DNA of 64,000 nt from positions 2,170,001 through 2,234,000 of the forward strand of contig BQFW01000006.1 in assembly GCA_020891255.1 (NCBI GenBank), in the 5' to 3' direction. The position numbers and the translations under genes were made by a program. This stretch comes from Entomortierella parvispora E1425. Lineage: Eukaryota > Fungi > Mortierellomycota. Positions 2,516 through 48,722 of this stretch are shown one piece after another. The notes under the pieces are model-generated. The model was not told the DNA's origin. It ran no database searches and saw only the letters and a list, made by a program, of their open reading frames with translations. Each line of letters begins with the position of its first letter. Position 1 is the stretch's first letter.

Positions 2516-2768
2516 AATGTTTTAATAAAGTTGTTGAGCACGCAAGACTCTTGTCGAATGCACAGATGGAAAGGGAGGGGGAGGAAATGAGCGATTGGAC
2601 AGGGGGGTAAATGCAGGTGATGGAGATGAAGGTGATCACTAATGGTTGCAGCCAGTCCTGTCGAATGCAGCTTTTGTGCTCAGGTTCATTTTTTTTTTTT
2701 TTTTGAGGCAGGACTGCTTATTGATTATGAAAAGCCACAATCGTCAACAATTTTGTTGATCACGTGAA

Positions 2769-5667
<2,899 letters not shown>

Positions 5668-6082
5668 ACGTTTGGGGAGGGGCAGAATCCTATTCATGGA
5701 CATCGCGCAGCGGTACAACTTTCGAGAGATTAGCCGCCTACTTGGGCGAAGCAAGTAGCTTGAGATCGACATGGTTGAGTCAGTCCCCTTTTTCACGTCG
5801 AACGCACAGGGCAGCCCTTCAAGACAGGTCATTTTTCAAACAATCAAGATAGGGCCGTGACTCAGTTGCGTGTGATGTGCGGCGAAATGATTTCTTGGTG
5901 GCACCAAAAAAAAAGCAGCGCCGGGACAATCATAAAAAGAAGAATAGCCGGGTGCTCCTTTCTTTCTTTTCGTCTTCATCATCAACACACAACCAGTTCC
6001 TTTTGAACAACCACCTCACACCCCCCCCCCCACACACACACACAAAGCCACAAAACCATAAAGCCAAACAGCAAAACCCATC

Positions 6083-6984
6083 ATGGTTGAGACAGCCTCA
6101 GCAGCCCCTGCCACGCAGCAGCAAAGTGACAACAAAGATCAATGGTCCTCTCAAAAGTACGACAAGCACGCCTCGTTCGTACCCGCCCTTGGTGCTCCTG
6201 TCCTTCGTCTCTTGGACCCCAAACCCCATGAACGCATCCTTGATCTTGGTGCTGGAGATGGAGTCTTGACCGTCGAGCTCCAGAAGCAATGTCAGTCAGT
6301 AGTAGCTGTTGACGCCAGCGCGGATATGATATCTGCCGCCCAACAGATTGGATGCAAGGATGCACGAGTCGTAGACGGACATGACTTGGTCGACGATCAA
6401 GAACTCGCCAGTGGACAATTCGATGCCGTTTTCTCGAATGCTGGTAAGGACCAACATTACATTTTATCACTCTTCCCCTCTTTGCGCCTGACGCCACAAA
6501 CCTAACTCAATCGGGCGCTTTGTAAATAGCCCTCCATTGGATGAAGAGAGACCCCCAGCGTGTGGTCGAGGGTGTCTACAAATGCCTCAAGCCTTCGGGT
6601 CGATTTGTGGCCGAATGTGGAGGTTACATGAATTGTAGCGAAGTCCGCACCGGTCTCCACGCGGCTCTCAAGAAACGTGGTCACAACCCCGAAGACTATG
6701 ATCCCTGGTTCTTCCCTGGCACCAAGACTTATACCCGTATGTTGGAGCAGCAGGGATTTAGGGTAGACTCCATCGAGTTGATCCCGAGATTGACGCCTTT
6801 GAACACAGATATCAAGGGATGGATCGAGACTTTTGGGTTCACGTTCATGAAGCCATTCGAGGGCGACGAGGAGACTCAACGAGAAATCCGAGAAGAAGTC
6901 CAGAACAACCTGAAGTTTTCGCAGGACGATGGCGTCTGGAGTATTATGTATGTTCGCCTGAGATTCAAGGCCACCAAGATCTAA
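6083..6984 (+). CDS. Class I SAM-dependent methyltransferase (Tam/trans-aconitate methyltransferase-like), one intron
   Basis: Motif I RILDLGAGDG, then VDASADMI, FDAVFSNA|ALHWMK and GRFVAECGG. Intron at about 6443-6529. Confidence 0.88.
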
Positions 6985-7947
6985 GGGTTGCCTGCCGAGG
7001 ATTGCAATTGGATACGATACACAGAAAACCACGAGCATACCAAACCTCATCTAGTTCCCAGCACAGCGACTCTATTCAACAGTATTCAGTTGGTAGGCAA
7101 CCATATAAGGATCTCAATAAACGCATGCGAAGGTTAGACCCGAGAAAGACATCCTTGGCCGCTTTACTTTTGCAACGCCAAACCTCCTACAAGTTGTATC
7201 TATTACCGGCATGGTCAATTGACACGTCCTCACCTCTATATCAATAACAAGGTGGCAAATGGGCCCCGCATTTTCCAATCCCCTTGATGATCATGTCGAT
7301 CACCTTCTGAATAATTGGTCATCCGAATGAGATAGACTATATTATTGATAGAAGACCATTCCTCCTCGTCGTCGTATATCCTAATGGTGCTCGGGTATGT
7401 ATAAATACGGCAAGTGTCGCTCAACATCCAGCTCTCCATCTTGGAATTAGTCACTGAGGTTGTTCTGTTGAGTTCATTTGCAAAATCGGGAAGTGTAATC
7501 AACTATTTTCTCCGGGATTCCTGGCAAGAAAGAAGCCAGGCCATTGCATCTCTTGTATATCTTTCGCGCCGCACCTAATCTTGTAGGATACTGCATGTTT
7601 TTCATCATAGATGACCCTGTCCTCCGTGGCATTAAATTGTGAAGCAAAGCAGTTTCCATTGCCCTCAATCGGTGGACAAAAAGTAGACAGTTCTAACTCT
7701 CAAAATCGGAGCGGGCTGTCGCTACAAAATCAAGTTAGAGACCACCCAAACCCTCCAGGAGCACCTTGGCCAAAGGTACTCATTCAGCAAATAAAAAATG
7801 TGACTGTTTGATCTGGAGGTAAACAAACCTTTTTCTTTTTTTTTTTGTTGTCTGCGTCTGGTCATTTCAGCGAGCGTCGAACATTCATTCGCATCGTTCG
7901 CATCAACCTTCAACTCAATCCCATCCTCCATCCCACACACATCAGAC

Positions 7948-9649
7948 ATGGACTCTCTCGAAGACGGACCCCAGGTCCAGGTCAAATTCATCACCCAGCA
8001 GCGCCAATTTGCCATTCCCGAGACTGCCATTCAGACCCCTGCTCGCCTCAGACGTTATGGTCTTTCACAAATTATCAACCTCGTCCTCCAGAATGAAGGC
8101 GGTGAGTGGACCAGGACCAGCGCCGAAAGAACGAAATGGGCTTTGATAAGACCCAAAGATCTCAGACCCTACTACCTTGTTACTAAAACGTAACCATCTC
8201 TCTCCTTTGACTAAAACAGAGAAGCAAAGACCTTTCGACTTTTTGATTGATGGCGAGTTCTTGAGGACTTCGTTGGCAGAGTACTTGGAGGAGAAGGGCA
8301 TGTCGACTGAGAACTTGTTGACGGTCGAGTATGTTGAATCTATGCTCCCCCCCACTCCTCTGTCCTCGTACGAGCACGATGATTGGGTCAGCGCTGTGAA
8401 GGCTCATCGTCAGGGAGGATTCTTGACTGGATCGTACGACAACCACGTTCGCCTCTGGAACAAGCAGGCGGAATGCACACAGGTCATGACCGGCCACAGC
8501 GGAGCTGTCAAGACTGTCCAGTGGCTCACATGTGATGGTAAAGGATCAACTTCCGTTCGTTCAACGCCTCTACTGGTCAACATTGGACTCAGTGGGAATC
8601 CGTTGGACTAACCTCCTTTTTTTTTTTTGTTCCCTTGGACCTATAGGCGACTCTGGCACTTTGTTGTCTGGAGCATTGGATAGATCTATCTTGGCTTGGG
8701 AGTACAACCAGTCGGACAACAGCCACTCTATTTTGTATGAGTGCAGAGGACACACTGGAGGAGTTGAAAGCATTGCCGTGAACGCAGCAGGCGACAGATT
8801 TGCCTCTGGATCTGCAGATGCTTCGATCAAGCTCTGGACGACAACTGTCCCCACTGTCAGCGACCATATTGAGGAAGTCACAGAGACTCGCAAGAAGCGG
8901 AAAACTGTCAAGGAGGACCGTATTCTCAAGGTAAGCACATTTCCCACCAACTTTTGCTGTTGCCCTCTTTAATTCTCCTGGTTGCTGATCCCGATGACCT
9001 TTTTTCAAAATTTATAGGCCCCTATTGCCAACTTCTCTGCCCACACTGGACCCGTTTCCGCCGTCGTCTTCAATCCCACATCCTCAGATACCCTTTACAG
9101 TGCTGGATGGGATCACTCTGTCCGTGTTTGGGATGTTGAGAACCACGTCAACCTTACCACCAAGGTACATTGAGTTACAAGGAACAGAGGGAGCACCAAC
9201 CCCGAAAGCACGTACTCGGAAGCACGTACTAACATCTATATCCCCCTTGTCTGATTTAGAACTGCGAAAAGGTCGTTCACTGCTTGGATTACTCTGCTCT
9301 TTCTGGACTCTTGGCCTCAGGCCATGCTGACCCTGTGATCCGTTTGTGGGATCCTCGTTCAGAAGACTCGTCTGTTGTGAAGCAGACTTTGAGCGGTCAT
9401 CAGAACTGGGTGTCGACTGTGTCCTGGTCTCCTACATCGTCATACATGCTTGCCAGCGGATCTTACGATGGATTGATCAAGGTTTGGGATATCCGTGCCA
9501 AGGGTGCTCTTTACACTTTGTCTCATGGAAAGGGATCCAAGAAGGTCTTCAGCATTGATTGGAGCGATGAGATTCTCTTGTCTGGAGGAGAAGATAACCA
9601 AATGAAGATCCACAAGATGCAGGACATGAGTGGACGGGACGAGGCATAG
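7948..9649 (+). CDS. YTM1: Ribosome biogenesis protein Ytm1/WDR12 (NLE/UBL domain plus WD40)
   Basis: QVQVKF...RRYGLSQIIN...PFDFLIDGEFLRTSL...ENLLTVEYVES...HDDWVS, followed by WD40 repeats (GHSGAV, GHTGGV, GHQNWV, SGSYDG). About 5 introns. Confidence 0.95.
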
Positions 9650-9990
9650 ATCCCCAATATTGAAAGATGATTTGAGAGTACCCTACAATTGCATTTTATA
9701 AACCCCCACATCTCAAAAAATACGGAATACGGCTAGTCTTCGAGTGAATATGTTGAGGAACTGTAAGCTATTTGTATGGAGTAATCATGACACCGAAATG
9801 TCAAAAGCTACGAGCAAGGAGTCGCACCTCTCCATAGCTGGTCAATGAGTCCAGCTCACTGAATGGTTGAGACGTTTGCAGGAGTCAGTCTTTCAATGCA
9901 AACACATTTGAGCTACTTGCTCGGACATGGTACGCAATACGGTCAGATTCAAGGCATCCACAGGTGAACGAGGAACAGCGCGATCAGGGA

Positions 9991-10895
9991 TCACCGAAGA
10001 ATAAGGAACGGCAGAAAGTTCTCGTGCTGAAACTCGATATCCTCTTCTCCTTGGATATCAACACTAAATATCAGAACATTGTACACCAGAGCAAGTCAGC
10101 CAGCTGCATCGTAGAGATGAACACGAAAACCAAGCCCATCGGTTGCCTTACGATTTTGCAGAGTACAGTCTCATTTGACGCATCTGCGTGTCCTTTCCTC
10201 CGAGATGGTTCGTAAGAATGGCGAACTGCAAAGCGAGAAGTGCTGGCGCATGGCCACTATTATTATCAATAAAAGTAAAAATCCAAAAAAAAAAAACACA
10301 AGCAACCCTGAATTAGATCATTTGAACTGCTTCCTGTTCTCCGTACGTCCTTCTGAAGAAATAACACGATTCTGAAAACACCGTCGTTTGCTGTACCTGC
10401 CAGGTGGATCCTCCAGACTGATGTGAGTCCATCCAGTGATTTGTGGCAAATCAACATATGTCAATTCTTGAACATCATACTCGGAAGGCCCCCCTCGGAC
10501 ACTGAGTCTGCATGCAGTATAACTCTCGTCCTGAGGGAAGTTCATGTAGACGGAAACTTTCAATACGCGCTTCCTCTTCGCAAACTTGACGTCAATGGTA
10601 TGTGGCTGTGGGCCACACGACCTGTAACAATGCAACCATAAATACTGTCAGTAGATGAACCTACGATTCCAAAAGGGCTCCGTAAAGAAGAATGGATGAT
10701 GTTCTTTCGCCATTACTGCCAGTAGGTTTCAAGGTCCCTATCGTTGATATTGTCGATTCCGTGGTTGGGGAGAGATGAGGATGCAGTCCATACGCCAGAG
10801 GTGCTGATTTCTCTCAGGTCCGCGCATTCCTCATCAGGGTGTCTGCCGGGCAGTGGCAATGCCACCGCGGGTTCTTCCAGCATTGAGTCGTCCAT
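9991..10895 (-). CDS. APC10: Anaphase-promoting complex subunit 10 (Doc1), multi-exon
   Basis: LREISTSGVWTASS...DLETYWQ|SCGPQPHTIDVKF...QDESYT...GWTHISL...ILTNHLGGKDTQMRQMRLYS: APC10/DOC domain. Start and last exon placed by eye. Confidence 0.88.
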
Positions 10896-11313
10896 AAGAT
10901 GCAAGTGGCGAACGTGGTGATGTGATGTTGCATGGACTCCAAAAAAGTACAAAAGTAGAAAAATTGGTGGCGCAACCTTGGGTGGCTTGGTCGACGAGAA
11001 TAAAACCTCGCTTCAAGTTGGCAAAGCTTCTTTTGAATCCTCTCAACTTTGGTATGTGATTCCGACCCTCGATCCATCCATCCGTATCTCGATCAGGACA
11101 GCCATCCATCCATCCATCTGCCCGACGTCAACACTTTGAGATTGCGGCACCCACTCACTGTTGCTTCTGGACATGGACATGGACTTGATAATGGACATTC
11201 GCACAGGATCACATCTGTATCAGGGATCAGAAAAAAAGGAAAAAAATTCTGACCATCGGACGACCTTCTCTTGCAATCCACTAGACCTTTAAATCCCTCG
11301 AACACTTATCATC

Positions 11314-12499
11314 ATGTCGAAGGCAGGCAAGAAGGAAGAATACTTCCAAAAGCTCAAGACCTACTTGTCTGAGTACAACTCCATCTTCATTGTCAACGTT
11401 GACAATGTCGGTTCCAACCAGATGCACGAGGTCCGTAAGGCTCTCCGTGGTGAGGCCAAGATCCTCATGGGTAAGAACACCATGGTCCGTCGCGCTATCC
11501 GCATCCTCCAGGCTGAGAACCCCGACTACGAGAAGCTCATGCCCTCCGTCCGCGGTAACATCGGTTTCGTTTTCACCAACGATGACTTGAAGACCATCCG
11601 TGACAAGGTTCTCACCAACCGTGTCAAGGCTCCCGCCAAGGCTGGTGCCCTCGCCCCCGTTGATGTGTTCATCCCCGCCGGTAACACCGGTATGGAGCCC
11701 GGTAAGACCTCTTTCTTCCAGGCTTTGGGTGTCCCCACCAAGATTGCCCGTGGTACCATTGAGATTATCAACGAGGTCCATTTGATCAAGGTCGGCATGC
11801 GCGTCGGTGCTTCCGAGGCTGCCCTCTTGAACATGTTGAACATCTCTCCCTTCACCTACGGTTTGAACGTCGTCCAGGTCTACGACCAGGGTACCGTTTT
11901 CCACCCCTCTGTCTTGGACATTGAGGAGGATACTCTTCTTTCCAACTTCGTTGCTGGTATCAAGAACATCGCCGCCATCTCCCTCCAGATCGGTTACCCC
12001 ACCGTTGCCTCGGTCCCCCACTCGATCATCAACTCCTACAAGAACTTGTTGGCCGTTTCCATCGCCACCGAGTACACTTTCCCCGGTGCCGAGAAGGTAA
12101 ATATTTGGAGTTTTACATGATTTTTTCATTACTTTTTTTTTCTGTATTTTTTTGTTCGGTTCGAGCCGTGTGATGAAAAACTTATTGTAGCCCGTCAAAC
12201 GGCTGTGACGAGATAATCAAACACTCTAATTTTTTCCTGATGGTTCCTGAATACTCTTTCATTGACAATCGTCGTTCATTGTCTGGACAATGTTGAGAAA
12301 ACCATGGAAACTAATCGCTCCTGTTCATTTTTGAACCGTTTCAATCAATCAGGTCAAGGCTTACCTCGCCGATCCCTCCGCTTTCGCTGTTGCCGCTGCC
12401 CCCGCTGCTGCTTCCGCCTCCTCTGCCGCCAAGGTCGAGGAGAAGGTTGAGGAGAAGGAGGAGTCCGATGACGATATGGGATTCGGTCTTTTCGATTAA
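11314..12499 (+). CDS. RPP0: 60S acidic ribosomal protein P0 (uL10), one coding intron 12097-12352
   Basis: [20 protein letters not shown]...[32 protein letters not shown], and C-terminal [14 protein letters not shown]. Strong codon bias. Probable 5'UTR intron at about 11052-11284. Confidence 0.98.
12163..12246 (+). ncRNA. Intronic box C/D snoRNA (predicted 18S rRNA 2'-O-methylation guide)
   Basis: Lies in the RPP0 intron. C box GTGATGA at 12170-12176, C'-like TGTGACGA, D box CTGA at 12237-12240, and a 6-bp terminal stem GAGCCG/TGGTTC. The sequence AAACACTCTAATTTTTTC directly before box D is complementary to the conserved 18S segment GAAAAAATTAGAGTGTTT. Confidence 0.85.
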
Positions 12500-13007
12500 A
12501 TTCTTCAATCGCCTGAGCATCGTTCATTAACTTGAACAGTGTACAATAATAAAAATGGATTTTCGAAGGAAGCACTGCAAGGTGTGATCCTTGGATCCTT
12601 TTGTTGGAACCGAAAATAATGAGCAGAATATGATAAGTTTGTATGAAGATGTGAAAGAAAAAAATTACAGTGCATGGACAACGCATCAATTGACGAAAGA
12701 TCTTATTTACCGACATCTACGTCTCGAAACTGCTCAACTCTGGATATTGTTTTCAAACTGTTGGGCATGACCCACAACAGCACGACCATGGCGCTCACAG
12801 GCTCTAAGTCAACCTCTCTGAAAAACAATGGTTCAATGATAAAAAAAATAGGGGGCGGGTCTCCATCTTGGAGCTTCGCTAGTAGCTATGGCAATGGGAC
12901 AAACAAACAGCATGTAGTACAATATTATGGCAATCGTGATGCAGAAATATGATTGATTGGTGTTTTGTTGTTTATTATACAAGGACGGGATGGTATTCTT
13001 GGATTCA

Positions 13008-14987
13008 TTAATGGACGACGACCAATTCATAGTCGTCTGCATCTGACCGTGCCAAGTCCAAGGCTGCATCGACGATCAGGTCCAATGGGTCCACAGACTT
13101 TTCGGGAGACTCGGCCGATGTGCCTTCATTTTCGAAAGATGCAGCAGCTGGGACTGAGTCCTCAGTGGGCTCAAGCATCTCGTGGTCTTCAGACTCGGAT
13201 TCGGACTCGGTAGCGGTTGCCAACTCGGGCGCTGCTTCTTCAGTCTCAACCTCAGCAGCAGTGGTGGTGGCAGTGGCTTCAGACTCGGAGACAGGAGCAG
13301 CAGGAGCATCTTGCACATTGTATGGCTCAACCTGATCATCCTCGTCAATGGGCTCGGCCTCAACAGTGTCCTTCTCGTTGTTACCGGTGGTGTCAGGAAG
13401 AGATTCGATGTCCGAAGGAGCCTCAAGCTCATCAACTTCAGACTCAACCTCGGCAGGCTCAGGGGTGGACTCGGGGGCAGACTCAGAGATAACAGCGGTA
13501 GGGGCAATGGCAGTCGTGGAAGTGTTGGCAGCGACAGCAAGAGCTGCGGCCTCAGACTCGGGGCCTGCATTCAACACTGCCTTCTTGCCACTCGTGGTCT
13601 CTCGGTTCTTGAACTCGTCAACGAGATCCAAAAGGCCTTGACTCTTCTTGATCAACTCCTTTCTGCGGGATCGGACAGAGAGATCACCCTCACTCATGAC
13701 AGAGTCAATGCGGACCATGGCTCGAGTCAAGCTCTCCTCAATCTGCAAGACTTGCTTGTTGGGCTGTGCGTCCGCAATGATGTTGTTCAGCTCGCGGGAC
13801 AAATCGTCGATCGTAGATTCAATGAGGTTCAATTCGGAGTGCTTCTCGTGGAGGGTCTTTTGCTGCTCGTTCTGACGTTGCTGGCGCTCGCGGAGTATGT
13901 CAGCGGCACGGAGCTCAGGAGACGAGTGAGTAGAGGATGGAGCGGAGGTAGACTTGGCATTGGTGTTGGCGTTGGTGTTGGTGTTGGAGGCAGAGGTGTT
14001 CTTGGAAGGGTCCTTGGAAGAGTTCTTGGGGGAGCACTTGGGGGCGTAGGCAGAGGAGGGGACTTCAATCTCAGCGCCGAGAGCTGCCTCGACCATGGCC
14101 TTGATGTCAGGAAAAGTCAAAAAGTAGTTGCCAATGACATCCTCATCGTCGCTCTCTGCGGCTGCGGCGGTCTTCTTGGCCTGCTCAGCCTTCTTGGCCT
14201 GCTCAGCCTCCTTTTGCTTCTGAAGCTCGATCTGCTTCTGCTTCTGCTCCTCTTCTTGCTGCTGCTGCTGGAGTTGACGACGTTTGAATGGATGCTCGCC
14301 CTGGGAGGACTGCTGGCGCTTGAGATGGTGCTGGGGGAAGAAGATGGCATTCAAAAGAGTGCTCAAAGCATCCTCCTCATCCTCCTCCTCTTCTTCGTCG
14401 CTGGTCTGAGCCTCCGCGGCCTTCTTGGCGGCAGCAGCCTCGAGTGCAAGTTGGTGCTGGCGCTGCTGCTCCTGTTGGATACGCTTGCGTTGGATTGCCT
14501 CAGCCTTGGCCTTGGCCTGTGCATTGGCCCTAGCCTGCTGGGCTGCCTGCTGTTCTTGAATGTGCTGCAAGAAAAAGTGCTCGAGAACGGCCTGCTTCTG
14601 CTGCTGCTCCTGCTGTTGCTTCTTGTAAAGATGGATGGCTCTCTGCTCGGCCTCATACTCGGCCTGAGCGCGAGCCTTGGCAAGACGGCGCTGCTGCTGC
14701 AAGGCCAATTCTTGATCGATCAACTGCTGCTGACGGCGCTCAAAGGCCAATTGCTGCTGACGCTGTTGTTCCTGCTGCTGTTGGCGGAGATACTGCTGGC
14801 GGGCTTGCTTCTGCTGGCGTTTGCGCTCGAGAGCAGCAAGGAGAAGTTGTTCCTCTTCGTCGATCGAGTCCTCACCCTCATCGTCTGAAATGGCAGCGGT
14901 GGTGAAGGTGGGGAAGGTATAGATCGGCTGGTGCTGGTGGTAGCGCTGGCGACGAGAGGCCGCGGGATGAGAAAAGAGCGAGTACAT
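13008..14987 (-). CDS. BAG-domain co-chaperone-like protein, Q-rich coiled coil and acidic tail (paralog 1), intronless
   Basis: BAG-like helix bundle LQIEESLTRAMVRIDSVMSEGDLSVRSRRKELIKKSQGLLDLVD. Likely start MYSLFSHP at 14987. TATAAAA at 15182-15188. Confidence 0.8.
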   Translation of the reverse strand: MYSLFSHPAASRRQRYHQHQPIYTFPTFTTAAISDDEGEDSIDEEEQLLLAALERKRQQKQARQQYLRQQQQEQQRQQQLAFERRQQQLIDQELALQQQRRLAKARAQAEYEAEQRAIHLYKKQQQEQQQKQAVLEHFFLQHIQEQQAAQQARANAQAKAKAEAIQRKRIQQEQQRQHQLALEAAAAKKAAEAQTSDEEEEEDEEDALSTLLNAIFFPQHHLKRQQSSQGEHPFKRRQLQQQQQEEEQKQKQIELQKQKEAEQAKKAEQAKKTAAAAESDDEDVIGNYFLTFPDIKAMVEAALGAEIEVPSSAYAPKCSPKNSSKDPSKNTSASNTNTNANTNAKSTSAPSSTHSSPELRAADILRERQQRQNEQQKTLHEKHSELNLIESTIDDLSRELNNIIADAQPNKQVLQIEESLTRAMVRIDSVMSEGDLSVRSRRKELIKKSQGLLDLVDEFKNRETTSGKKAVLNAGPESEAAALAVAANTSTTAIAPTAVISESAPESTPEPAEVESEVDELEAPSDIESLPDTTGNNEKDTVEAEPIDEDDQVEPYNVQDAPAAPVSESEATATTTAAEVETEEAAPELATATESESESEDHEMLEPTEDSVPAAASFENEGTSAESPEKSVDPLDLIVDAALDLARSDADDYELVVVH

Positions 14988-15334
14988 ATTGAATGCTGTT
15001 TGTATAGTGATGGGGATTGATACTGAGGGTGGATGAATGGATGGAAAAAGGGCGGTGAGGGAAGTGAAGGAAGTGAATGGAGAGACTGGCAGCTGTTGTT
15101 GTGGCCCTTGAATCAAAGGGAATGTAAGTGATGAAGTTCTTTTTTGTGATGAGAGTCCTTTCTAGGCAAGATGCCGGTTCCTTTTATATTAAAAGAAGGT
15201 TATGTGCCTGTGTGCGTCTCCCGTGTTTCGTCATGGATGCTGAGCAAGCAGACATACGCGCAAGGCCCACTTGCGCGTTCTCGAATCCCCCCGAAGGCTC
15301 TGACAAATTCGATTTGTTGTGTCAGCAGAATCCA

Positions 15335-15350
15335 ATTCTAGCACCTTCGA
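15335..15350 (-). promoter_or_regulatory. Heat-shock-element-like site upstream of BAG paralog 1
   Basis: The minus strand reads CGAAGGTGCTAGAATT (GAA units 10 nt apart), conserved with the paralog 2 promoter. Confidence 0.4.
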
Positions 15351-17482
15351 TTGTCTCCCAAATCGGGAAGAGTGGTGTGACAGGTCGTGTTTTGCCACCA
15401 ATCCACATCCCGCACTTTCGCCGCAGCCATGTTTTTTTTGCATGCACCAGCCCTCGTCCTCGCCCAACATCCTCTTTACTACCAACAGATACCTCTTTAG
15501 GATTCCTTTCGTCCACAAGCTCAAGAAATTTCTCCGGTAGTCAGTTTTGCTGCATCATCTTTGGTTCTTCGCCTTACCTGGCTACTGTTCGCCACTCAAA
15601 TGGCCTTCATTGTTGCCATGCCTGCTGCCTAACACGCAGAGTCCGGTCTGGCTGTTTCTACGGTCTTTATTTCATGATACACTTTCAGCGTTGTTCTCCG
15701 TTTATTCCTACCTCACCAGAAGCAGTCCATCCATCTTGATAGCTTTTACTGCGTACTCCACCTAGTGGATAGCAGCTACACGCGCCAGCAATTGCACCGA
15801 GTCATTGGTTGGTTTGATGGTCTGATGGTATTGAAATTCGCATGTGGAGACGAAAGACCCACATTTTCTCTCGACTGAAGAGGAGTATATTGTCGCCTGC
15901 TGCCACTACACGGGACACTATACCTTTTTTTCTTTCTTTTTTTTTTTCTTGGTCCCTGGCTATAGTCTTCATTCATCTATGGACGGGATCAATTGAAAGT
16001 GGGTTTATATTAAGAAACCAACCGAGCACAGGGCATTTGATTGTGGAAAGTGAAGGCATCGCTGCAGCAAGTAGGTTTGTCGTTGTATGATCAGGACAAA
16101 GTTCCCATCGACTCTCACAGTTCCACCCTCGAGACGGGAAGAACAGTTTTCACTGACGCGGTTGAAACAACTTTCAACTTCATCTGCACTGCATCGTCTT
16201 TGAAGCAGATCCGACAAGCCGAATTGTTTGTTGACGTGCTTTTTTTTTCCACCGAACAACAATTTGTTCCGAAAGAAGGACATTACGTGCAACATGAGTG
16301 GAGTTGCACACGCCTCGTACAAATACACCCACGGTCCCCTTTTTTTGCGGAAAAGCATGTGGGAATAGACTACGCAAGAGGCACCAACGGGTCCCCTGAT
16401 CAGTACAAGGAGATCGCGAACCCCATAGATGAGATCTTGTTTTCCACCTCTTGTTTATTTTCTGTTGGGGAAGAGGTAACGAGGATCTTCACCTCAAGGT
16501 AGAGCCAAGACGACTCGTCAGATTATTTGAGGGAGAAAGTTCGCTTAAGATAGAATGTGGACTACGTAATTGTGAATCGAAGGAGGTTGGCTGGCGGTGA
16601 GGGGTTCAAAAGAGCCCATCGATGATAAACTATCTGCTGGCGCCCAAAATGAAAACCAAGTTGACAGGAACGAATCGAAGAGCTAGAAGAGTGGAGAAAG
16701 CATTCAGAGAAAACTAATGAGTGTCTTAGGCGCCAGCGCGCCTATGGATGGATAGTTTCGTCTCCACACAATGGTGCCAGAACCCATGACCACAAGAACG
16801 CAAGAATGTAGGAGGACAAGATTGCAAGAAAGCAGCAAAAGAAGAATTGTTGCACCGCATCTCCTATGAGATTCAGGCCCACCCTCCCTTTGGCTTTCCC
16901 CAATTGATCTGTAGTTGACCTTGTCAAGGACATGTAACCCCTCTGCGTGGCGTGGCATGGCAGAGTACGTGTGGCATGTTGTGTCTCTGTGTTGCGTTGG
17001 TTTGCACATGCTCCTGATTTTTTTTTTTCGCCTTCTCCACTTCCCAATAACCATAAAAGGGCCAACATATTCAATTCCATTCAATCGGCTCGCTCCTTCC
17101 TCGCTGCATTTCGCCAGCCGAGAGTTTATTTCCTGCTGTCTGCCGTCTGCCGTCTGCAGTTGCCCGTTGCAAAAACTCCCCCTGTCCTTTCGCCCATCTC
17201 GTTGAGAGCAGCTGGGCGCAACAGCTCACAACTCACCTCGACCCTCTGTCCCCTTCCTCTCCTCTCGCTGGGTTGAGGACTTGAGGTGCAGACGACTCTT
17301 CCCCCTCTCTCTTCTTTTCTTTTCTCATCCTCACCCCACATTTATTATTTGTGCAGACCTTCGCTCCACACTCTGCTTCTCGCTCTTCTTTTCGTTCTCC
17401 CATTGCGCTCTCCATTATATCCAAGGACGGACAACACCAGGACAGACAATCTATCGCCCTTCATAATCAACAGGAATCAGCC

Positions 17483-20400
17483 ATGGCCACCCCTCCTGAC
17501 CATAACAACCTCAACATGAATAGTCCGACAAATCTTGGCAGCGGTGCCATGGATCTTACTCAAGAAAATCGCCAGAAACGACTCAAAGCCGGTACTGCCT
17601 GCACCAACTGTCGACGAAAGAAGCTGAGATGCACAGGCACACCCATGTGCCAACGCTGCACCACACATGGTCTCGATTGCGTCGTCGACGAGGCCTTGTT
17701 CCTGAAGACCAACAGCCCCCAGAGTCTTCAAGGAAAACCTGTTGCGCGCCCCTCGATCCACAGCAACCCCTCCTCTACATCAACACACCGCTCTTCAAAG
17801 AGCCATCACCACCATCACGGTCACAGCAGCAGCAGCCACAGTGGACAGGCCAACTACCACCATCACCAGCAGAACCGTCATAATCACAACAATAACAATG
17901 GACATCACGATCAAGGATCGGTGTCATCACCGTCTGTCTACTCGGACGACTGCATGGAGCCTGCAGACTTCGTGGACTCGCTGTCGGATCGAAGAATGTC
18001 TGCCAGCAGTGCTACAAGCCTGTCGAGTATGAGCCCCAGCCCTTCACCTGGATACTCTTACAACTACTTGGATCAAGGAAGCAGCAGTAACAGTCATCAC
18101 AGCAACCACAACAACAATGGCTCCTCTTCGTCTTCTTCCAAAGCACGGAAATCATCTCACCCCCGTCCTAGGAACGATGGGTCTGATTCCTACGGTCCCT
18201 CAGGTCCATCTTCCTCCTCGACATCATACCCAATGGGGTCGTCATCGAACCCACAGCAGTCGAGCAAGAAGAGATCGTCTAAGGATCAAGGCACGACAAA
18301 GCACAAACAAAAGAGACACAACTCTCGCGAGGACGACGACCCTCGCTCACCGTCCCCTCTTCCTGAAGAGTCCCACTACTCCAACAGCAACAGCAACAAC
18401 TCGACTGGAAGATCTACTTCAGCCTCGACCTCAACTGGCACGTCCACCGGAGGAGCAAACTCGTCCTCAGCCAAGGGCAAGGACAAGGAGGAAGACTACA
18501 AGTCTGTTGTGAGCACGATGAGTTTGGATGGTCATGGTCAACAGTGAGTCCTTCTTTCCTGCTTCATTGCTCTCATTAGCCTCTCCACCTGTGCACTCTC
18601 CACCGAGTGGTGGTGTGGTTATTCCCCTGCTGCAATATCATTCATCATTCAATCAACCTAAATTTCTAAACCTTGACCAAGATATTAACCACTCTCGATT
18701 TTTTATTTTTTCTTGCATGTAGTTTCCACGGAAGTAGCTCAGGCTTCTATGTTTGTCAACTCAGCTCGCGCTATCGTCAGGGTGTCTGTAAGTCTCTTTC
18801 CTGTGATTGCTCGATCACGCCTGACTGGCTCTTGTAAACGAGCTTGTTGGGGATACAATGAGCTCACAATGGACGTTATCTTTGTTCCTGTGGCATAGAC
18901 CCTCTCCCAATGGCCCATCTCAACGATAGCGATCTGTGGTCACATTCGCTGCAAATGACTAGTGAACGGGAACTTCCGACAAAGCCAGAGATGGACAATT
19001 TGCTGGGACTTTACTTTCGATACATGTACCCGTTTGCGCCCATGTTCATCCGCAGGACGTTTATGGAACACCACAATTCCTCCAGGCCCGACCTTTCGCA
19101 GATTCTTATCTTGAATGCCATCTTCTGCAACGCTTGCTGGTACTCGGATGATCCTGTGGTACGACAAGACTCGACAAAGTTCTTCAACAGGGCAAAGATT
19201 ATCTTGGACGAAACGTACCATGTCTCGCGAGTCAGCACTGTCCAGGCCTTGTTGCTCATGTCCCATCACCAGTACGCAGTCGGAAACTACTCCGGAGGAT
19301 GGCTTTACACCGGAATGGCTACCCGAATTGCCCACGTAAGCTGAGATTTAACTGTTGTCACTTTAGGCACTTCTCTACTTGATCATACTCACTCATTCCT
19401 TGCACGTCTTACAGGATATTGGTTTGCATCGCCAGGACGTGCACCAGGTGAATGATCCTGAGGAAGCCGAAGTCAGGAAGCGAGTTTGGTGGGCGGTATA
19501 CATTGCGGATCGTCTTGGAGGTGGTATTTTGGGCCGCCCCCTCAATTTGCGGGACAAGGAGTACAATGTGCAGATGCCCTCGGACGACTGGATTGCAGAG
19601 CTTGGTGGGGATGATGAAGTCCAGTACCCATATGAACCGGAGCGTATCATCTCCTGCCGACTGCTGTGGGCCGTGAAACTGTTCATGCAGATGGGCAATG
19701 TCCTCAACACGATGCACTGTATTGAGGCCGAAATCAACGGAGCCTTCCTAGCGGATATCTCAAGGACACAACTGCCTCAGCTCCACAACAGTCTGACTTC
19801 TTGGTTCCTGTCCCTTCCCAACGAGCTCATGTATACACCTTACACAATGTCTCCCAACTCTAACCACCCCCCGTCTCCGCCCACGGCGCTCATGCACATG
19901 TTCTACTATACATGCCTGACCATGTTGCATCGACCATACCTCCGACCCGTCAATTCTGCGGCGATCGATGCCAACTTCTTGGTCTCTTCTCGCAACATTT
20001 GTACAGCAGCGGCGACGAATGTCTGCCACATTGCAGATTCGCTGATGCTCCATGGACAGCTCCGGGATACTTGCTATTACGGTATGGCCTGTCTTCTCGC
20101 TGCAGGCACTGTGCATGTCCATAACGCCATCACGCCCACCCCCAGTAACCGAGAGACGACTCGGGCAGGACTGTCCAAGACGGTTAAGGCCGCGCACGAA
20201 TTGGTGAAGACCTTCCCTGTGGCCGAGTCCCTGGTTGCGGTGGCTTTAGACGTGTTCGCGAGCCAGACGAGTTCGGTTCCTACGGAAATGGCGGCGTCGT
20301 TCATTGATATTTCGACCTTTGTGGCCCCGTTTATTGATCTGACCCAGTTGCAATCGACCTCGATCGGAAACATTTACGAGGCCGCGCGGTTAGCCAAGTT

Positions 20401-42680: not shown

Positions 42681-43474
42681 GTTGCATGCCTGAACACAGC
42701 GGTTCAATAATAAACTTACTAGTCGGTCCTGGTGTCTTGCTCTGTTACTCTCTTTTGTTCCTCTTCTCCCGCTCCTTCTTTCTCGGCTCTGTTCTCTTTG
42801 AGCGCAAGCAAGGCGCAATGGACCCCCCAGCAACGGTGGATGGAGGCACGTGTTGGCTTTTGTGTAGATGGATCAAGTCAAACTTCCATTAATGAATAAT
42901 TTCAAATATGAAGGTTAATCGACATTTTATCACGTGGTGAAAGCAGTCCAAACTTTATACAAGGCAGCGCGGTCCATGGCATTTCGCTTTTGTTTCGACG
43001 CGAAACAAATGCCACATCTACTTTCATATCTTCTCCTCCCTCTCTCTCGCTTTCACTCCTGCGCTTTCCTTTCACTTTCTTGCTCTCTCTTTGATCTGCC
43101 CATCAATCCTCAGACCACGACATCTGTCAGTTCCTTCCCCTACTCATCGCAAAGACACCAGTTCCTCCCATCCAAAAAGCACCACGAACACAGTCCACAG
43201 CAACCAACCTTTTAGTGGTCTTTGTTTATTCGAAACGTTCACCATCCATTGTCACCACAGCGCCGCCTTTGTTCGCAAAGCACGAATTGCAGCAGACTCA
43301 ACAAGGTTGTTTTATCCACAGGCAGCCGACTCCATTACGGCTGCGTTTGAAGTCAAAAGTTTAAGAGGCTAAAGACCCATCAAGAGTGGGGTAAGCCCAA
43401 TTGCCCTTCGAGATACAGTAGCATCCAGCCAGGAATCTAACCTTGCTAGCACCCCTCTTGTAGATATCTCCACC

Positions 43475-43942
43475 ATGGGTATCGCCGGATTGTGGCCCTT
43501 GATCAAGACCGCGGGGATTCATGTGGATCCAAAAACCATAACCATCAACAACCTGCACTACGACGTGATGGCTTGCCACTACAATGATTTTATCAATGCC
43601 ACAGTTGATAAAAAAAGCCTGCGTTATACGTCCGACTCGTCCCAGCCAGGCGGGGGCCCTGGGACAGGGCTATCGTCCTCTTCCGCACAACAGCCTGTTG
43701 TCTCCTCATCAACGGTCGCAACCGTTCCGGCTCATCAAAATATCAGAGATTTGGCGAAGAAGATCTTTGACGACACCTGGGCCCTATTTCCACTATGCCA
43801 GTCCATATCGTTCCACCTGGATGGTGCGGACGGCTACACCAAGGAACAAGAGCACGCTCGTCGAGCCAAGACGCGGCAACAAGCACGTCACCGTGCCAGG
43901 GTTTGGAATCAAGAGAAACCGAAACGTCATCAGGGACTTTGA
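43475..43942 (+). pseudogene. Truncated XPG/FEN1-like (PIN-fold) nuclease N-region, out of frame with the downstream H3TH/Fanzor frame
   Basis: This frame ends at 43942. The H3TH-like motif starts at about 43875 in another frame. No I-region EAD/DxD motif lies between them and there is no canonical intron. Confidence 0.65.
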
Positions 43943-46900
43943 CCCTGCGGTCGTCCAGGCACGGAAAGAGAGGGAGGCAGAAGAGCGGAGAAGGAAGGCT
44001 GCCCTGAAAAAGTCAACATCCAAGGGAAAGTCTTCAAGGAAAAGGACCAGAGACGCCTCTCCTACTGAACTGCCGGCAGATACAAGCACGATGGTTTCCT
44101 CTTCCCCCTCCGTCATCTCGGTGGCTGTTATCTCCCGAAAGCGAGAGGCATCCCGAAAGCGAAAGGCCTCCCCAGTGGATGAGCGTTGGCGGACAATGAC
44201 TCCACGTCAATATCTGAGCCGTTACTGTGAGGCGGTGACAGAGAGTCTAAAGGACGAGCGTCGCGTTCTGCCAAGTCGATACGAGCGATCCCTTCTGGCT
44301 TTTGCTTTTCTCTGCACATCCCTGGCTGGGAAGAAGGACGACAAGGTTTTATTGAAAGCTGGAAGGAACATACGTCAATATGAGCCACGCACCATCGAAG
44401 AAGGGGACGAAGAACAAGAAGAGATTGGTCCAGATCAGTTGGGACCTCCTGTAGAGATCGATGAGCCAAAGCTGTTCCAGGATCTCTATAACCGATATGT
44501 CCAGGAGATGGGCAGAAGCAGAGCCCTTCCTGCAAACCCAGTGTCGGTCTCGACGTAAGTGCTTTGGTAGTTTGAAAAATGTGTATAAGAGTGCTAAGTT
44601 GACAATATTACTCATCCAATGTGCTCAATGTCAATTTCTATAGTCTTAAGACATATAACTGCAGTTATCGCAATCATGGGCGCAGTCGTTGGCGTAACCC
44701 CTACGAACACATCTTTCCTCGCGTTGATTCCAATGGCAATGCCTCCTTTCTTGCTGGTCTCGAAGTCGCAGACATTGGGAACTGCAAAGAAAGGCCTCAT
44801 GGACCACACCAAAAACAAGGTGGTCGCAAGGGTCAAGGTATGGTCAAAAAAAACATGGCCAAACGTCGCAAACGCAAGACCAAGGCTGATGCTGGAACGG
44901 GCCGGGTGAAGATCTACCAGCAAAAGGCAGAGATTGACCCTACAAAGCCCACCAAGGAGTCTAATGTCACTGCAGAAACAACAAAGCGCCGTCAAATGGT
45001 CAAGGATTTTGTCACCATTACCATCACGGCCGGATCCCTGCTTGGTAACATCCAGCAGTGTCTATCTGGTGCCGAGGCGATTGCAGTCAACAAACGCATT
45101 CAAGATTGCGTGGCCACAAAACTCAGACTGGAAAACGATCTGTACGACATCTATGCTGTCTGCATTGACAAGTTCCGCCAGAGAACTACAGCGGCTGCTG
45201 TTCTATCCTCTCTTGTTGGTCCATCTCTTGCTGGTCCGTCCTCCGTTGGTCCATCTCTTGCTGGTCCGTCCTCCGTTGGTCCATCTCTTGCTGGTCCGTC
45301 CTCCGTTGGTCCATCTCTTGCTGGTCCGTCCTCCGTTGGTCCATCTCTTGCTGGTCCGTCCTCCGCTGGCCTGGCCTCCACTCCCCTGTCAGCGTTGCAG
45401 GGCACCGACGGTCTCCCAGATGACTTTTTCGAACAGATTGTCGGCCCTCGCGCCAATACAATTGCATTTGGCCTGATACCCTTTCTCTTCAACGGCACCA
45501 GAACTCAGGGTGCAAAGAGTCCTGAGGCTGCCACTGTTGCCTCAATGTTTGCTATATACAAAGAGTCTCTACCTATACCTTTTTCGAGCTATAAGGAGAG
45601 AGGCTGGCAGACGTTTGACACGAATGCAGGGCAGTCTTCGGCTGTACAAGTCGTCAAGAATATCAAACACCATTATCGGACAGCAAAAGTAGGTATTTTG
45701 ACGATCATAATCTATGAACAAAGCACAGATGAACTAACATTGTGTACTGTCTATCAAATTAGATCAACCATGAGGTCTGGCCAAAGTCCACCAAGAACGA
45801 CTACATTGCGTGGTTTTTTCAGCACAATAAGGGTCAATTTGCTGACTATGTTCAAGGCAAAATTGCGTCCCAGTTCACACGGGTTGATAGTGCCGACCTT
45901 TTTCGGTTTCTGGCTGCAAAACAGCCTGCACCAAGTAGCGCAGAAGACCCTATTCTGAAACAGCTTCTTCTTCGCATTTTTGGTGCAGACAAGCCAAACC
46001 AAAATCAACGGATGCGGTATGTCACGAAACACAAAGGATGGCTTTTTTCCCAGATTCTTTACAAGATCGATCCACCGGGGACCACCCGATTTCGAAGGTA
46101 CCATCGTAAAGCCCGGCTGCAGGATGATGAGGACGACCCCAACCCACTGGTGCTAGGTCAAAGTCTCCAGACGAACGGGCGTGTCCTCAATATTCAAGTA
46201 TCCGATACGAGACGACCCAAGCCCAAAAAGAAGAAAAAATCGGAGGATCCGGACAGCCAAGATCCAGCTGACGACAAAGACGATGAGGACGATGATGAAG
46301 ACGACGATGAAGACGACGGTGGCGACGGTGACGACGATTTTTTCGACTACAATGAGGACGATGACCCCAACGAGATGCAGCCACTGAAAGACGACGACGA
46401 CGAGGATCATGAGGAAGCCATCCCAGCCGATGCAGATAAACAGACAACCCAGACTGGAGTCGCATCCCAGCCCACATCCAAGCCAAAGAACCCAGGTCCT
46501 GTCACGTTCAACAATGGCTCCACGTACACTTTTGGCAAAGGGTCTGCCACATTGCCCAATGCCAGCGCGTTTGACTTTGGCGATATTACCACGGGAGAGG
46601 TCACTGTCATTGGCATCGATCCTGGCGAAGTATTCTCGATGACAGCCACGCGCCTGAGACTCAATGCCGAGAAATCAGGGACAACAAACGACCGTGCGTC
46701 CAAGCGCATTCGACGGTCATTTCTTTACCATCCGGTCCGACTGTTCCAAGAGGCTGTCAGGGTGAAAAAGGTCAAAGAGCATATCCATCTGCTCGAGACA
46801 AATATCCCGCCCTTCAAGCCTCTATCCATTTTAGAGCGGATGCGTTACCTGCATTCACCGGCCCAGCAGGTTCTGGGGAGGTTACTAGGACCGAATACAC

Positions 46901-47619
46901 CAGTGTCAAACCTTCAAGGCACAGTGAAGGACGTGCTGTTTGACTTTTACCACTCCCCTTGGATGCTAAAGAGAAAGTGGGACATGAGGAAGGCGCAACA
47001 GAGGGCCATTGATCTTGCGATGGACCAAATCTTCAAGCTCGCGGGAGTCCTCTCGGGCAGGAAGGCCGATGGTAGTGCTGGAACAACGGTGGTGTTTGCT
47101 CTTGGTCTTGGCTCATTCAACTCTCGGACGGGCCTGCCATCTAAACATGGGCCATTGGAGCGGCGATTCACTCGAAGGGTAAGTAATAATACCGCAAGGA
47201 AAATAACAACAAAAAAAAAAAAAAAAAAAAAAAAAAAATCGTATGGTTCCCTGTTGACATCATCAATTAACATTTTTTCCCCTTTGTTCTGATACATGAT
47301 ACAGGCCAGGCGGCTAGGATACATTGTCGTTGGCGTGGATGAGTACTACACCAGTGCAAAGTGTCTCCGCCAAAACTGCGATGCGTTCTTGCAGTATGGA
47401 GAGCGACGATCCAAGTATTGCACGGCATGCAAGCAGTACTTTGATCGCGATGTGGTGGGATCGGAGAATATTGCGTATATCTGTATGCAATTCATTCTGG
47501 GACAAGAGAGACCGCCAAAGTTCTGCCCAATTCCGGAACCGTTCCACCTTACTGTCACGAATGTTAAGGACGCCGTCGTTGAGCTGGGTACAATGACCAT
47601 CAAAAGCCTCCTTGGCTGA
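43584..47619 (+). CDS. Fanzor1-like RNA-guided DNA endonuclease; spliced frame 43584-44554, 44644-45688, 45763-47178, 47305-47619 is open (about 1248 aa)
   Basis: Splice phases were checked by hand (2, 0, 0) and keep the frame open. RuvC-I D at 46618-46620, RuvC-II E at 47341-47343, RuvC-III D at 47449-47451. Zinc finger CLRQNC...CTAC. Confidence 0.8.
45215..45364 (+). repeat. Five perfect 30-bp tandem repeats encoding (VGPSLAGPSS)5
   Basis: GTTGGTCCATCTCTTGCTGGTCCGTCCTCC x5, head to tail, no spacers. Confidence 0.98.
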
Positions 47620-48722
47620 CTCCTTTATTGTACCGAGGAACAAGAACCATACCGAGAACCATACCAAGAACCATATAAGCCATTCGGAAAATGGCTAACC
47701 GATGTAAGTGTTTACAAGTGTTTTTGTCTGCCCCTCCCTCATACACAGCAATGCCCGTTAATAGATTCCTGACCCCCAAACCCTTTCTTTCTCCTGCCTA
47801 ACCTAACCTACCTCCTTGCCGCATGGGCTGATCAGTTACAACAAGTAAGTTGCAGATGTCCTTTTTTTTTTGGGCATTAGTTGTCAACCTTCTTATAATG
47901 AACTAACGTATTCTCACGATTTTATTCATTTACACGGGTTTAGCTGTATTATGGCTGCCTTCCCTTTTCAACGTGGCATGAATCGCTCAGCCACTCAAAT
48001 ATCTTGAACCTCCCGGTGCAGAGCGGAACATTGTGGAGTGACAGCAATCCAGCTGCAGTGAATTGTGGCAGGCGCACGTTACAGAGGTGCACTGGCGTAT
48101 ATCAAGTGGATACGAAAGGGATGGGTTGAGAGAGGGAACAAGAGACAGAGAGGCGACAATGAGGATGATCCGGCTCGGGATCAGCATCAAGATCAGGATC
48201 ATAACCGATAGGATAGGAGCCAAGCTGCAAGGACAGCCACCCAAAAGCGCCAGAGGTCCAGACCCGCTTGAAATCTTCCTTTCTCTTTCCAGCAGCGGGA
48301 CCAAAGTCTTCCGCCCCGTCCAAGCTCAATCCTTTCCTTCTCCTCCAGCTCAATAGCCTACACCCCCTCTTTTCTTGTGCCATCATTTGTTCTTCATCCA
48401 CAATCTCCATTCAGATTCAATCCTTTTCCGCGCTCGGTCCATTCATTCCTCCATTCTACACTAGGCAGAAAGTACGTGTCTAATAGAACAGTCCTTGAGA
48501 GTGAATAATGGCCAACCATCGTCGCACGTTCTTGTCGGAGACAGAACAAAATAAGGATTTCATGATTGGACAGAAAGCAGACGGTGCTCTCTTGCCTCAT
48601 TTAGAAGATTGAGTGTTGGACCATTGTTCCCGCGAAGGAAACTGCCCGCTTGGCCTTTGGTCTGGACCCTCACTTGAGTCAGCTTTTCCCATAAGAAGGA
48701 GGACAATGTCGACAATCAAAAA

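Follow-up and report, generated by a model that had tools for sequence, protein, structure and literature searches.

A predicted XPG/FEN1/EXO1-Fanzor1 fusion gene in a multi-copy Mortierellaceae element, with a defective copy in Entomortierella parvispora

To our knowledge, no RNA-guided DNA nucleases other than Fanzors are known from eukaryotes, and what these enzymes do in nature has yet to be settled. Engineered Cas9/Cas12-exonuclease fusions, used in genome editing, couple a programmable nuclease with a 5'-3' exonuclease so as to alter the outcome of repair. Here we describe a locus of the fungus Entomortierella parvispora E1425 at which a Fanzor gene is joined to the remnant of a second, XPG/FEN1-like nuclease domain. 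It lies in a stretch of 64,000 nucleotides (nt; contig BQFW01000006.1 of GenBank assembly GCA_020891255.1, positions 2,170,001 to 2,234,000 of the forward strand), referred to as the window and numbered from its first letter. Our preferred reading, to which we give a probability of about 0.6, takes the locus to be one defective copy of a multi-copy Mortierellaceae element with one XPG/FEN1/EXO1-Fanzor1 fusion gene, whose intact copies would combine guided cutting with 5'-end processing.

Among the closest described systems is SpuFz1, encoded by the Spu-1 element of Spizellomyces punctatus. Like the window family, SpuFz1 is specified by a fungal, intron-containing gene with a glutamate relocated to the side of a four-cysteine (C4) zinc finger and with a TNB domain, it is the family's best PDB match by both sequence profile and fold, and it belongs to a single-gene element without a transposase of its own (PMC10432273). 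However, SpuFz1 has ~640 amino acids (aa) and no added nuclease, whereas ~800 aa here, made up of an XPG/EXO1-like domain and a linker, precede the Fanzor module; Spu-1 also has inverted repeats, which the Mortierellaceae elements, known here from sequences alone, lack. TnpB of IS200/IS605 is a RuvC nuclease of the same superfamily whose elements likewise leave no target-site duplication (TSD), and it has been proposed to cut empty sites and thereby prompt homology-directed re-copying. IS605 is moved by a separate HUH TnpA, which is absent here, while the present elements have a eukaryotic host, a spliced gene and a second, fused nuclease, and the subterminal hairpins of IS200/IS605 are no part of their known picture. 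DNA transposons with terminal inverted repeats (TIRs) also carry Fanzor1 (Tc1/mariner, hAT, MuDR and others), whereas neither TIRs nor a fixed-length TSD are found here. Unlike Helitrons, the elements have no Rep/Hel gene, and in the subfamily to which the window belongs (A) the termini read GTCAAAC...GCTGTA(T) with variable flanking bases, where Helitrons insert between A and T.

The fusion partner resembles the Rad2/XPG nucleases (EXO1, FEN1, XPG, GEN1 and compact viral FEN1-like enzymes such as poxvirus G5), in that intact members keep the predicted fold, all seven conserved acidic positions, a helical arch with lysines and arginines (K/R) and a motif like the helix-three-turn-helix (H3TH). 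It is nevertheless very divergent (13-18% identity), falls below Pfam thresholds and is fused to a predicted RNA-guided nuclease, and its core is deleted in the window. In contrast to the man-made Cas-exonuclease editors, the Mortierellaceae fusion is natural, conserved and transposon-borne.

A first-pass annotation, made by a model from the letters of the window, had proposed a flap nuclease linked to a Fanzor in one gene and had named chance juxtaposition among the outcomes that would refute it. At the level of the family the linkage was borne out: the XPG-like plus Fanzor architecture recurs in at least seven Mortierellaceae species and three divergent subfamilies, and the complete nuclease domain, including the I-region, was obtained in the protein P0110, the I-region also in an open reading frame (ORF) of a second E. 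parvispora copy, L002. With exon 3 as query, an exhaustive phmmer search returned 99 relatives, and every one with a source name came from Mortierellaceae. The element is to date known only from this family, and the window holds subfamily A of E. parvispora or a very close relative. The fusion family, in which single annotated proteins carry the two halves or portions of each, includes the following members among others.

EMPS_08562 (P0110), 1413 aa, Entomortierella parvispora: both halves intact, subfamily B type.
EMPS_06270, 1363 aa, E. parvispora: long fusion protein.
EMPS_06259, 1231 aa, E. parvispora: long fusion protein.
P0111, 1244 aa, Gryganskiella cystojenkinii: long fusion protein.
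Five near-identical proteins, ~1100-1500 aa, Linnemannia gamsii: long fusion proteins.
P0017 and P0108, 1008-1085 aa, Benniella sp.: fusion family members.
P0010 and P0082, partial, Mortierella alpina: fusion family members.
P0013, partial, M. antarctica: fusion family member.
EMPS_10881 (P0112), 1074 aa, third subfamily A copy: one gene model running from the XPG-I end through the Fanzor C-terminus.

The first exon of the P0110 gene forms an uninterrupted ORF of 543 aa from the complete nuclease domain into the linker, and three introns occupy positions equivalent to those of the window. Both the XPG-like and the Fanzor part were present in every repeat unit compared (subfamilies A, B and C). 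The ratio of nonsynonymous to synonymous divergence (dN/dS) between subfamily A copies was 0.26 and 0.34 and, on small counts, stayed below 1 in the XPG-N part, the linker beyond the deletion and both Fanzor exons, which points to purifying selection on the whole predicted protein, XPG part included, in the lineages that gave rise to the copies. As read from these genes the fusion is genuine, recurrent and conserved, with one predicted spliced gene encoding both nucleases in intact members. It was probably overlooked because the XPG-like domain escapes Pfam and gene models are often split; public annotation frequently divides the locus, as in EMPS_08451, which is the Fanzor half alone. A word-based search with the Fanzor half of P0110 returned only four proteins, none of them new, and was dominated by low-complexity words.

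The flap-nuclease-Fanzor element is apparently new to the literature, as the first-pass annotation had supposed. A full-text search, whose reach did not extend to subscription-only papers or Repbase, found no paper on a Fanzor-XPG fusion. Fanzor combined with FEN1, flap endonuclease, PIN domain or exonuclease retrieved editing reviews only, TnpB combined with XPG occurs in two papers, of which the one listed is a study of Cas12a R-loop cleavage that names each term once, and in the four main surveys of Fanzors there is no mention of Mortierella or of a fused nuclease.

We examined the N-terminal domain by profile and by fold. A profile of eight family N-terminal domains matched the PDB sequences of XPG (E=8e-8), Rad2 (6e-7), EXO1 (1.4e-6), FEN1 (8e-6) and GEN1 (8e-5), and no other PDB family fell under E=0.1. 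The AlphaFold2 model of P0110 residues 1-275 had a predicted local distance difference test score (pLDDT) of 74 and a predicted template-modelling score (pTM) of 0.72. Foldseek with this intact domain returned human EXO1 first (E=1.4e-7, template-modelling score (TM) 0.62), then FEN1 (6.7e-7), XPG (1.2e-5) and GEN1 (3.7e-5), with Rad2 also matched, supporting the predicted FEN-type, PIN-like fold with its helical arch. In the AlphaFold DB the best match was an uncharacterised 1083-aa protein (TM 0.70, 28% identity), followed by XPG-I, EXO1 and FEN1 entries, and language-model features lay nearest to compact XPG_N/XPG_I clusters, which we take as a lead only. D (HYDV), D (HxDG), E-x-D, D-S-D and N-D-Y, which supply the metal-binding acidic side chains of this family, are kept in every aligned member covering them. 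The I-region (CSTEADTCIA, TRDSDLIMY, KNDYTSNFPGFGIK) is present in paralogues and intact relatives and absent from the window copy. Taken together, profile and model place the N-terminal domain of intact copies in the Rad2/XPG superfamily (XPG/FEN1/EXO1-type), as a predicted 5' nuclease.

The C-terminal half had been described as a full TnpB/Fanzor module with catalytic motifs, and a motif search located each of them.

46165-46179, + strand: LQTNG.
46612-46629, + strand: GIDPGE.
46945-46962, + strand: FYHSPW.
47101-47118, + strand: LGLGSF.
47338-47355, + strand: DEYYTS.
47362-47430, + strand: C4 finger, C-x4-C...C-x2-C.
47443-47472, + strand: DRDVVGSENI.

The last exon matched the Pfam TNB domain PF07282 (Cas12f1-like_TNB) at E=1e-8, with 35.6 bits against a cut-off of 26.3. 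The published Fanzor motif, D-X(125,275)-[TS][TS]-X-X-[C4 zinc finger]-X(5,50)-RD (Bao and Jurka 2013, PMC3627910), is satisfied, with the D of GIDPGE lying 201 residues before YYTS, followed by AK-C-x4-C...C-x2-C and KQYFD-RD. A 34-sequence profile of the C-terminal half had SpuFz1 as its best PDB match (E=7e-4). At the canonical RuvC-II position the window reads LGLGSF, with no glutamate, and the E of DEYYTS aligns with that of 'DEYKTS' in SpuFz1, an equivalence resting on the alignment. Relocation of the RuvC-II glutamate is typical of Fanzors (PMC10530073), and SpuFz1 has E541/D383/D606 as its active site (PMC10432273). For EMPS_08451 (P0001), whose identity to window exons 3-4 is 96%, the model had pLDDT >85 over most of residues 310-590. 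Foldseek with this model gave SpuFz first (E=7e-9), followed by Cas12j, PpFz, ApmFz2, Cas12m, Cas12f and TnpB, and all 50 listed matches were Fanzor, Cas12, TnpB or close relatives, so that the RuvC match to solved structures looked for in the C-terminus was obtained. By every feature testable, the C-terminal half is a predicted Fanzor1-type RuvC nuclease.

The window copy of this gene departs from the intact 1250-1290-aa enzyme with four introns that the first-pass annotation had described. Chaining of ORFs gave three canonical GT-AG introns, each of which brings the next ORF back into frame, and the supposed first intron proved to be a deletion with a frameshift. The locus has the following layout.

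42877-47949, + strand: whole element copy, ~5.07 kb, between host genes, by homology to the third copy L007 (from 42876) and to L002 (from 42907), ending at 47949/47950; the left end is uncertain by a few nt.
42877-43474, + strand: 5' non-coding region, presumed promoter and 5' untranslated region, within the repeat unit; 93.6-94.6% identity to L002/L007 with many indels; no ORF assigned.
43475-47619, + strand: predicted spliced gene, ATG to stop, from chained ORFs with three GT-AG introns and coherent phases.
43475-43898, + strand: exon 1, first part, XPG-N remnant (MGIAGLW..HYDV..HLDGADGYTKEQEHARRAK); sub-threshold Pfam XPG_N match, aligned with N-terminal domains of intact relatives, whose family profile matches PDB XPG/Rad2/EXO1/FEN1.
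43898/43899, + strand: deletion junction and frameshift, from blastn against L002/L007 and from loose contig ends in sequencing runs X1 and X3.
43899-44554, + strand: exon 1, remainder in shifted frame, whose translation shows the last part of the H3TH-like motif (GFGIKRNRNVIRDF), a stretch rich in K/R and conserved linker; 97.6% identity to L002, dN/dS 0.17-0.42.
44555-44643, + strand: intron 1, 89 nt, donor GTAAGT, acceptor TATAG, frame restored; subfamily B has an intron at the equivalent position.
44644-45688, + strand: exon 2, unassigned linker with the basic stretch KRRKRKTK and a 15-nt tandem repeat; no Pfam match.
45689-45762, + strand: intron 2, 74 nt, donor GTAGGT, branch point CTAAC, acceptor TTAG.
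45763-47178, + strand: exon 3, with which the Fanzor module begins at its N-terminal side (LQTNG strand, acidic insert, RuvC-I GIDPGE, FYHSPW helix, LGLGSF), from motif coordinates, phmmer relatives and the P0001 model.
47179-47304, + strand: intron 3, 126 nt, donor GTAAGT, acceptor ACAG, containing an A28 run and an in-frame stop at 47290-47292; same position in subfamily B.
47305-47619, + strand: exon 4, relocated RuvC-II glutamate (DEYYTS), C4 zinc finger/TNB, RuvC-III (DRDVVGSENI) and stop codon, from PF07282 and profile alignment to SpuFz1; dN/dS 0.05-0.33.
47620-47949, + strand: 3' non-coding tail, 330 nt, to the constant end ...GGGTTTAGCTGTA(T), the expected place of a Fanzor omegaRNA.

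The middle of the protein, described earlier as about 600 aa of unassigned sequence, remained so: the linker measures ~550-600 aa, and neither a Pfam search of the window nor an Atlas search with P0110 residues 420-830 returned anything informative. Within exon 2, the tandem repeat at 45185-45399 has a 15-nt unit in ~10 units that code for GPSLA/GPSSV, and copies vary in its length; in L002 this repeat has received the insertion of a ~5-kb retrotransposon fragment that carries a Ty3-type integrase. The A28 homopolymer of intron 3 falls within window 47196-47248, where reads and contigs are interrupted.

The deletion was defined by comparison with L002 and L007, which come from the same assembly and are 95-98% identical to the window over most of the gene. 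Precisely between 43898 and 43899, blastn placed extra sequence of 539 nt in L002 and 531 nt in L007. The missing 531-539 nt correspond to the XPG-I core with the helical arch and the E-x-D, D-S-D and N-D-Y acidic residues, and the ORF at L002:2667-4010 keeps this segment intact (helical arch, CSTEADTCIA, TRDSDLIMYS, KNDYTSNFPGFGIK) together with the rest of the nuclease. In run X1, from the window's own strain, and run X3, from a second strain of the same species label with flanks ~5% diverged, contigs of other copies branch at 43898/43899 into the deleted sequence, AAGTTGAACTTGATACC... and ...AACGACTATACGTCCAACTTTCCC. A reading of the frame switch near 43880 as an intron was ruled out, since no usable GT..AG signals are present and the paralogues prove the deletion. 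From the first ATG (43475) the window ORF terminates after 155 aa; a 1248-aa ORF is available only from an ATG at 43584, with its first ~100 aa out of frame relative to XPG-N. Because the flap-nuclease core is deleted and the frame shifted, the window locus is a defective element copy, and as its ORFs read it is unable to make the full fusion protein and could yield at most an XPG-less predicted Fanzor. Of the XPG/FEN1 N-terminus first described at this locus, the N-region motifs (MGIAGLW, HYDV, HLDG...K..E..RR) are present, but with a sub-threshold Pfam XPG_N match (E=0.023) they make a weak XPG assignment when the window is taken by itself; the family profile supports the homology. The I-region is deleted and VPGFGIK lies in another frame.

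A further difference concerns the A7 run at 43610-43616, which is one base longer in the window than in L002/L007, leaving the window in frame and both paralogues shifted; the difference may be genuine, or the public assembly may have a homopolymer error here. For L002, the annotated 741-aa model implies an 80-nt 'intron' that would excise the conserved ACHYxD block, and we rejected it; the annotated intron is most likely a patch over the 1-nt difference in the A run.

The element family is multi-copy and mobile and inserts at new sites. In run X1 the flanks of the window copy are single-copy (depth 74-83) and show no differences, unique contigs stop at 42907 and resume at 47921, and depth within the element rises to 290-770, ~4-9x single copy. 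Run X3 has a single-copy contig in which 42875 is followed, after 61 nt, by 47974; from this empty site it follows that the strain lacks the element here, while related copies reach ~25-30x single-copy depth. Run X8 contains part of the left flank and lacks the element family. Flank comparison placed copies between unrelated host genes. Two subfamily B copies, L005 and L006, share 99.87% identity and are found ~32 kb from each other, in inverted orientation. The subfamily B elements (~6.7 kb, EMPS_08562 type) have the following extents.

L004:2271-8975.
L006:2180-9007.
L005:3041-9009.

The earlier statement that no transposase lies in or near the locus agrees with our scan, which found no transposase domain among ORFs of at least 180 aa across ~35.6-58.2 kb of the window; apart from a CUE-domain protein and a chitin synthase, none of these ORFs matched Pfam. 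The element carries one gene, neither it nor its neighbours contains a TnpA (HUH or serine recombinase), and it lacks a Rep/helicase gene as well as Helitron-like 5'-TC...CTRR-3' ends. The definition of element ends and TSDs proposed in the first pass had a divided outcome, in that the ends were located but the element has no TIRs and the flanks of eight copies no regular TSD. The 3' terminus is constant within each subfamily and ends in GTA in all three.

Subfamily A, 3' end: ...GCTGTA(T).
Subfamily B, 3' end: ...ACATGTA.
Subfamily C (Linnemannia), 3' end: ...CTCAGTA.

The 5' ends are variable: the leftmost ~30 nt are substituted in L002, L005 lacks the leftmost ~780 nt common to L004 and L006 and starts at a (TCC)n microsatellite, and the Linnemannia copies are mosaic at the 5' end. 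The 3' tail is 96.5-96.9% identical between copies, compared with synonymous differences (pS) of 5-18% in the exons, and tails of different subfamilies do not align at the DNA level. Subfamily B carries an 8-nt palindrome, TACATGTA, at both termini. In L011 (Linnemannia gamsii; ~2000-2029 and 8637-8650) a 15-nt direct repeat, CAGTAGCAGTATCGT, seen in no other copy, lies 11 nt before the apparent left end and across the right junction. In the window tail (47620-47949) there are also two stretches that resemble introns (GTAAGT...CACAG and GTAAGT...CTAAC...) and, at 47855-47880, a hairpin whose loop is T10.

In the preferred reading, an omegaRNA from the 330-nt 3' tail of intact copies, with its guide read from the flank, would guide DNA cutting by the Fanzor module. 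At the break, the 5' strands would then be resected or cleared of flaps by the tethered EXO1/FEN1-like domain, and this 5'-end processing could steer repair towards homology-directed copying of the element, in parallel with the TnpB-driven cut-and-copy retention proposed for IS605. A cut-and-copy role has already been discussed for Fanzors, with Spu-1/SpuFz1 elements being Fanzor-only and without a transposase (PMC10432273).

Several observations weigh against this reading. The tail gives little sign of a structured RNA: the window tail has no folding signal (z=-0.54 and -0.19 against shuffles), the z-scores overall are -0.54, -0.19, +1.94 and -2.39, so that two of the three subfamilies are no more stable than shuffles, and an Rfam search of the tail gave no match. 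Among the copies compared, no conserved motif lies immediately left of the element as a candidate target-adjacent motif. Pfam finds no XPG domain above threshold in any family member, although the family profile and fold search do, and the P0001 model reaches a TM of only ~0.3 to SpuFz because one third of its chain is disordered. All three readable subfamily A copies are damaged (the window by its deletion, L002 by a ~5-kb insertion carrying a Ty3-type integrase that splits it, L007 by one further frameshift). Finally, variable 5' ends suit simple allelic homing poorly, and simple homing does not account for insertion at new sites or for the 5' heterogeneity.

These difficulties leave room for other explanations of how the element spreads. 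It is unlikely, in our judgement, that the element is a non-autonomous passenger moved in trans by a transposase encoded elsewhere, with the XPG-Fanzor protein aiding retention only or having some other role. Such a passenger would fit the lack of a transposase in or near any copy, the typical position of Fanzor1 genes as cargo of other transposons (PMC3627910) and the similarly transposase-free Spu-1 elements (PMC10432273), but the TIRs and consistent TSD expected of a DDE transposase are absent, the ends are not those of a Helitron, and the whole long ORF including the XPG part appears to be under purifying selection. We think it quite improbable that the element uses a new self-sufficient copy-in chemistry, in which an RNA-guided break would be where copying is primed, at the constant 3' (GTA) end, with displaced flaps trimmed by the FEN-like domain. 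That chemistry would account for the 5'-truncated and mosaic copies and for their lack of TIRs and TSDs, and it matches both the constant GTA end with variable 5' ends in all three subfamilies and the encoding of no other enzyme; yet only three to four copies are available per subfamily, later deletions or recombination could equally yield the 5' differences, the element encodes neither a polymerase nor a recombinase, and such a chemistry has no precedent.

The other two rivals would deny that the locus belongs to a mobile fusion element at all. The first-pass annotation had suggested a domesticated programmable nuclease, that is, a host gene for fungal repair or defence, and splicing, basic stretches resembling nuclear localisation signals and a dN/dS below 1 between copies would suit such a gene. 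This is contradicted by the multi-copy status with sharp repeat boundaries, by presence and absence between strains at this very site and the lack of the family from X8, and by the breakage of copies through deletion, frameshifts and retrotransposon insertion; a single syntenic orthologue across Mortierellaceae was not seen, and we regard domestication as very improbable. Scarcely credible is a chance juxtaposition or gene-model artefact in which an XPG-like pseudogene lies upstream of an ordinary Fanzor: annotation does often split the locus, with EMPS_08451 covering the Fanzor half, but the same order recurs across the species and subfamilies listed above with continuous reading frames and conserved intron positions, and the repeat unit always holds both parts.

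We return to the XPG-Fanzor element with guided cutting and 5'-end processing. A conserved, selected end-processing fusion in a recently mobile, transposase-free element suggests a route from guided break to element copying. In its strongest form, which we offer tentatively and consider rather doubtful, intact members would be natural two-nuclease RNA-guided enzymes that make a guided break and then resect or de-flap it, and the element would be transposase-free and self-copying ('cut, resect and copy-in'). If true, this would be a mode of propagation not described for eukaryotic DNA elements and a natural counterpart of the engineered Cas-exonuclease editors. Intact genes such as EMPS_08562 provide a concrete, testable system. 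The practical interest would be that exonucleases are tethered artificially to Cas enzymes to bias repair, and a fusion of this kind has apparently arisen and been retained in evolution. As to annotation, the family is a case in which Pfam misses the XPG-like domain and public models split the gene.

Two minor observations concern the sequencing runs. Run X6 (1.1 Gb, of unknown kind) gave many contigs of 75-150 nt on window 43400-47970, 85-95% alike and at depths of 2700-18700, which suggests that a related family is highly expressed, or present in many copies, in that sample; the run showed no splice joints. Other contigs skip 43212-47904 (window 43177-47904, X1) or 47534-47876 (X1 and X3), with the shorter side supported by only 26-29 nt, and may represent internally deleted derivatives of the element.

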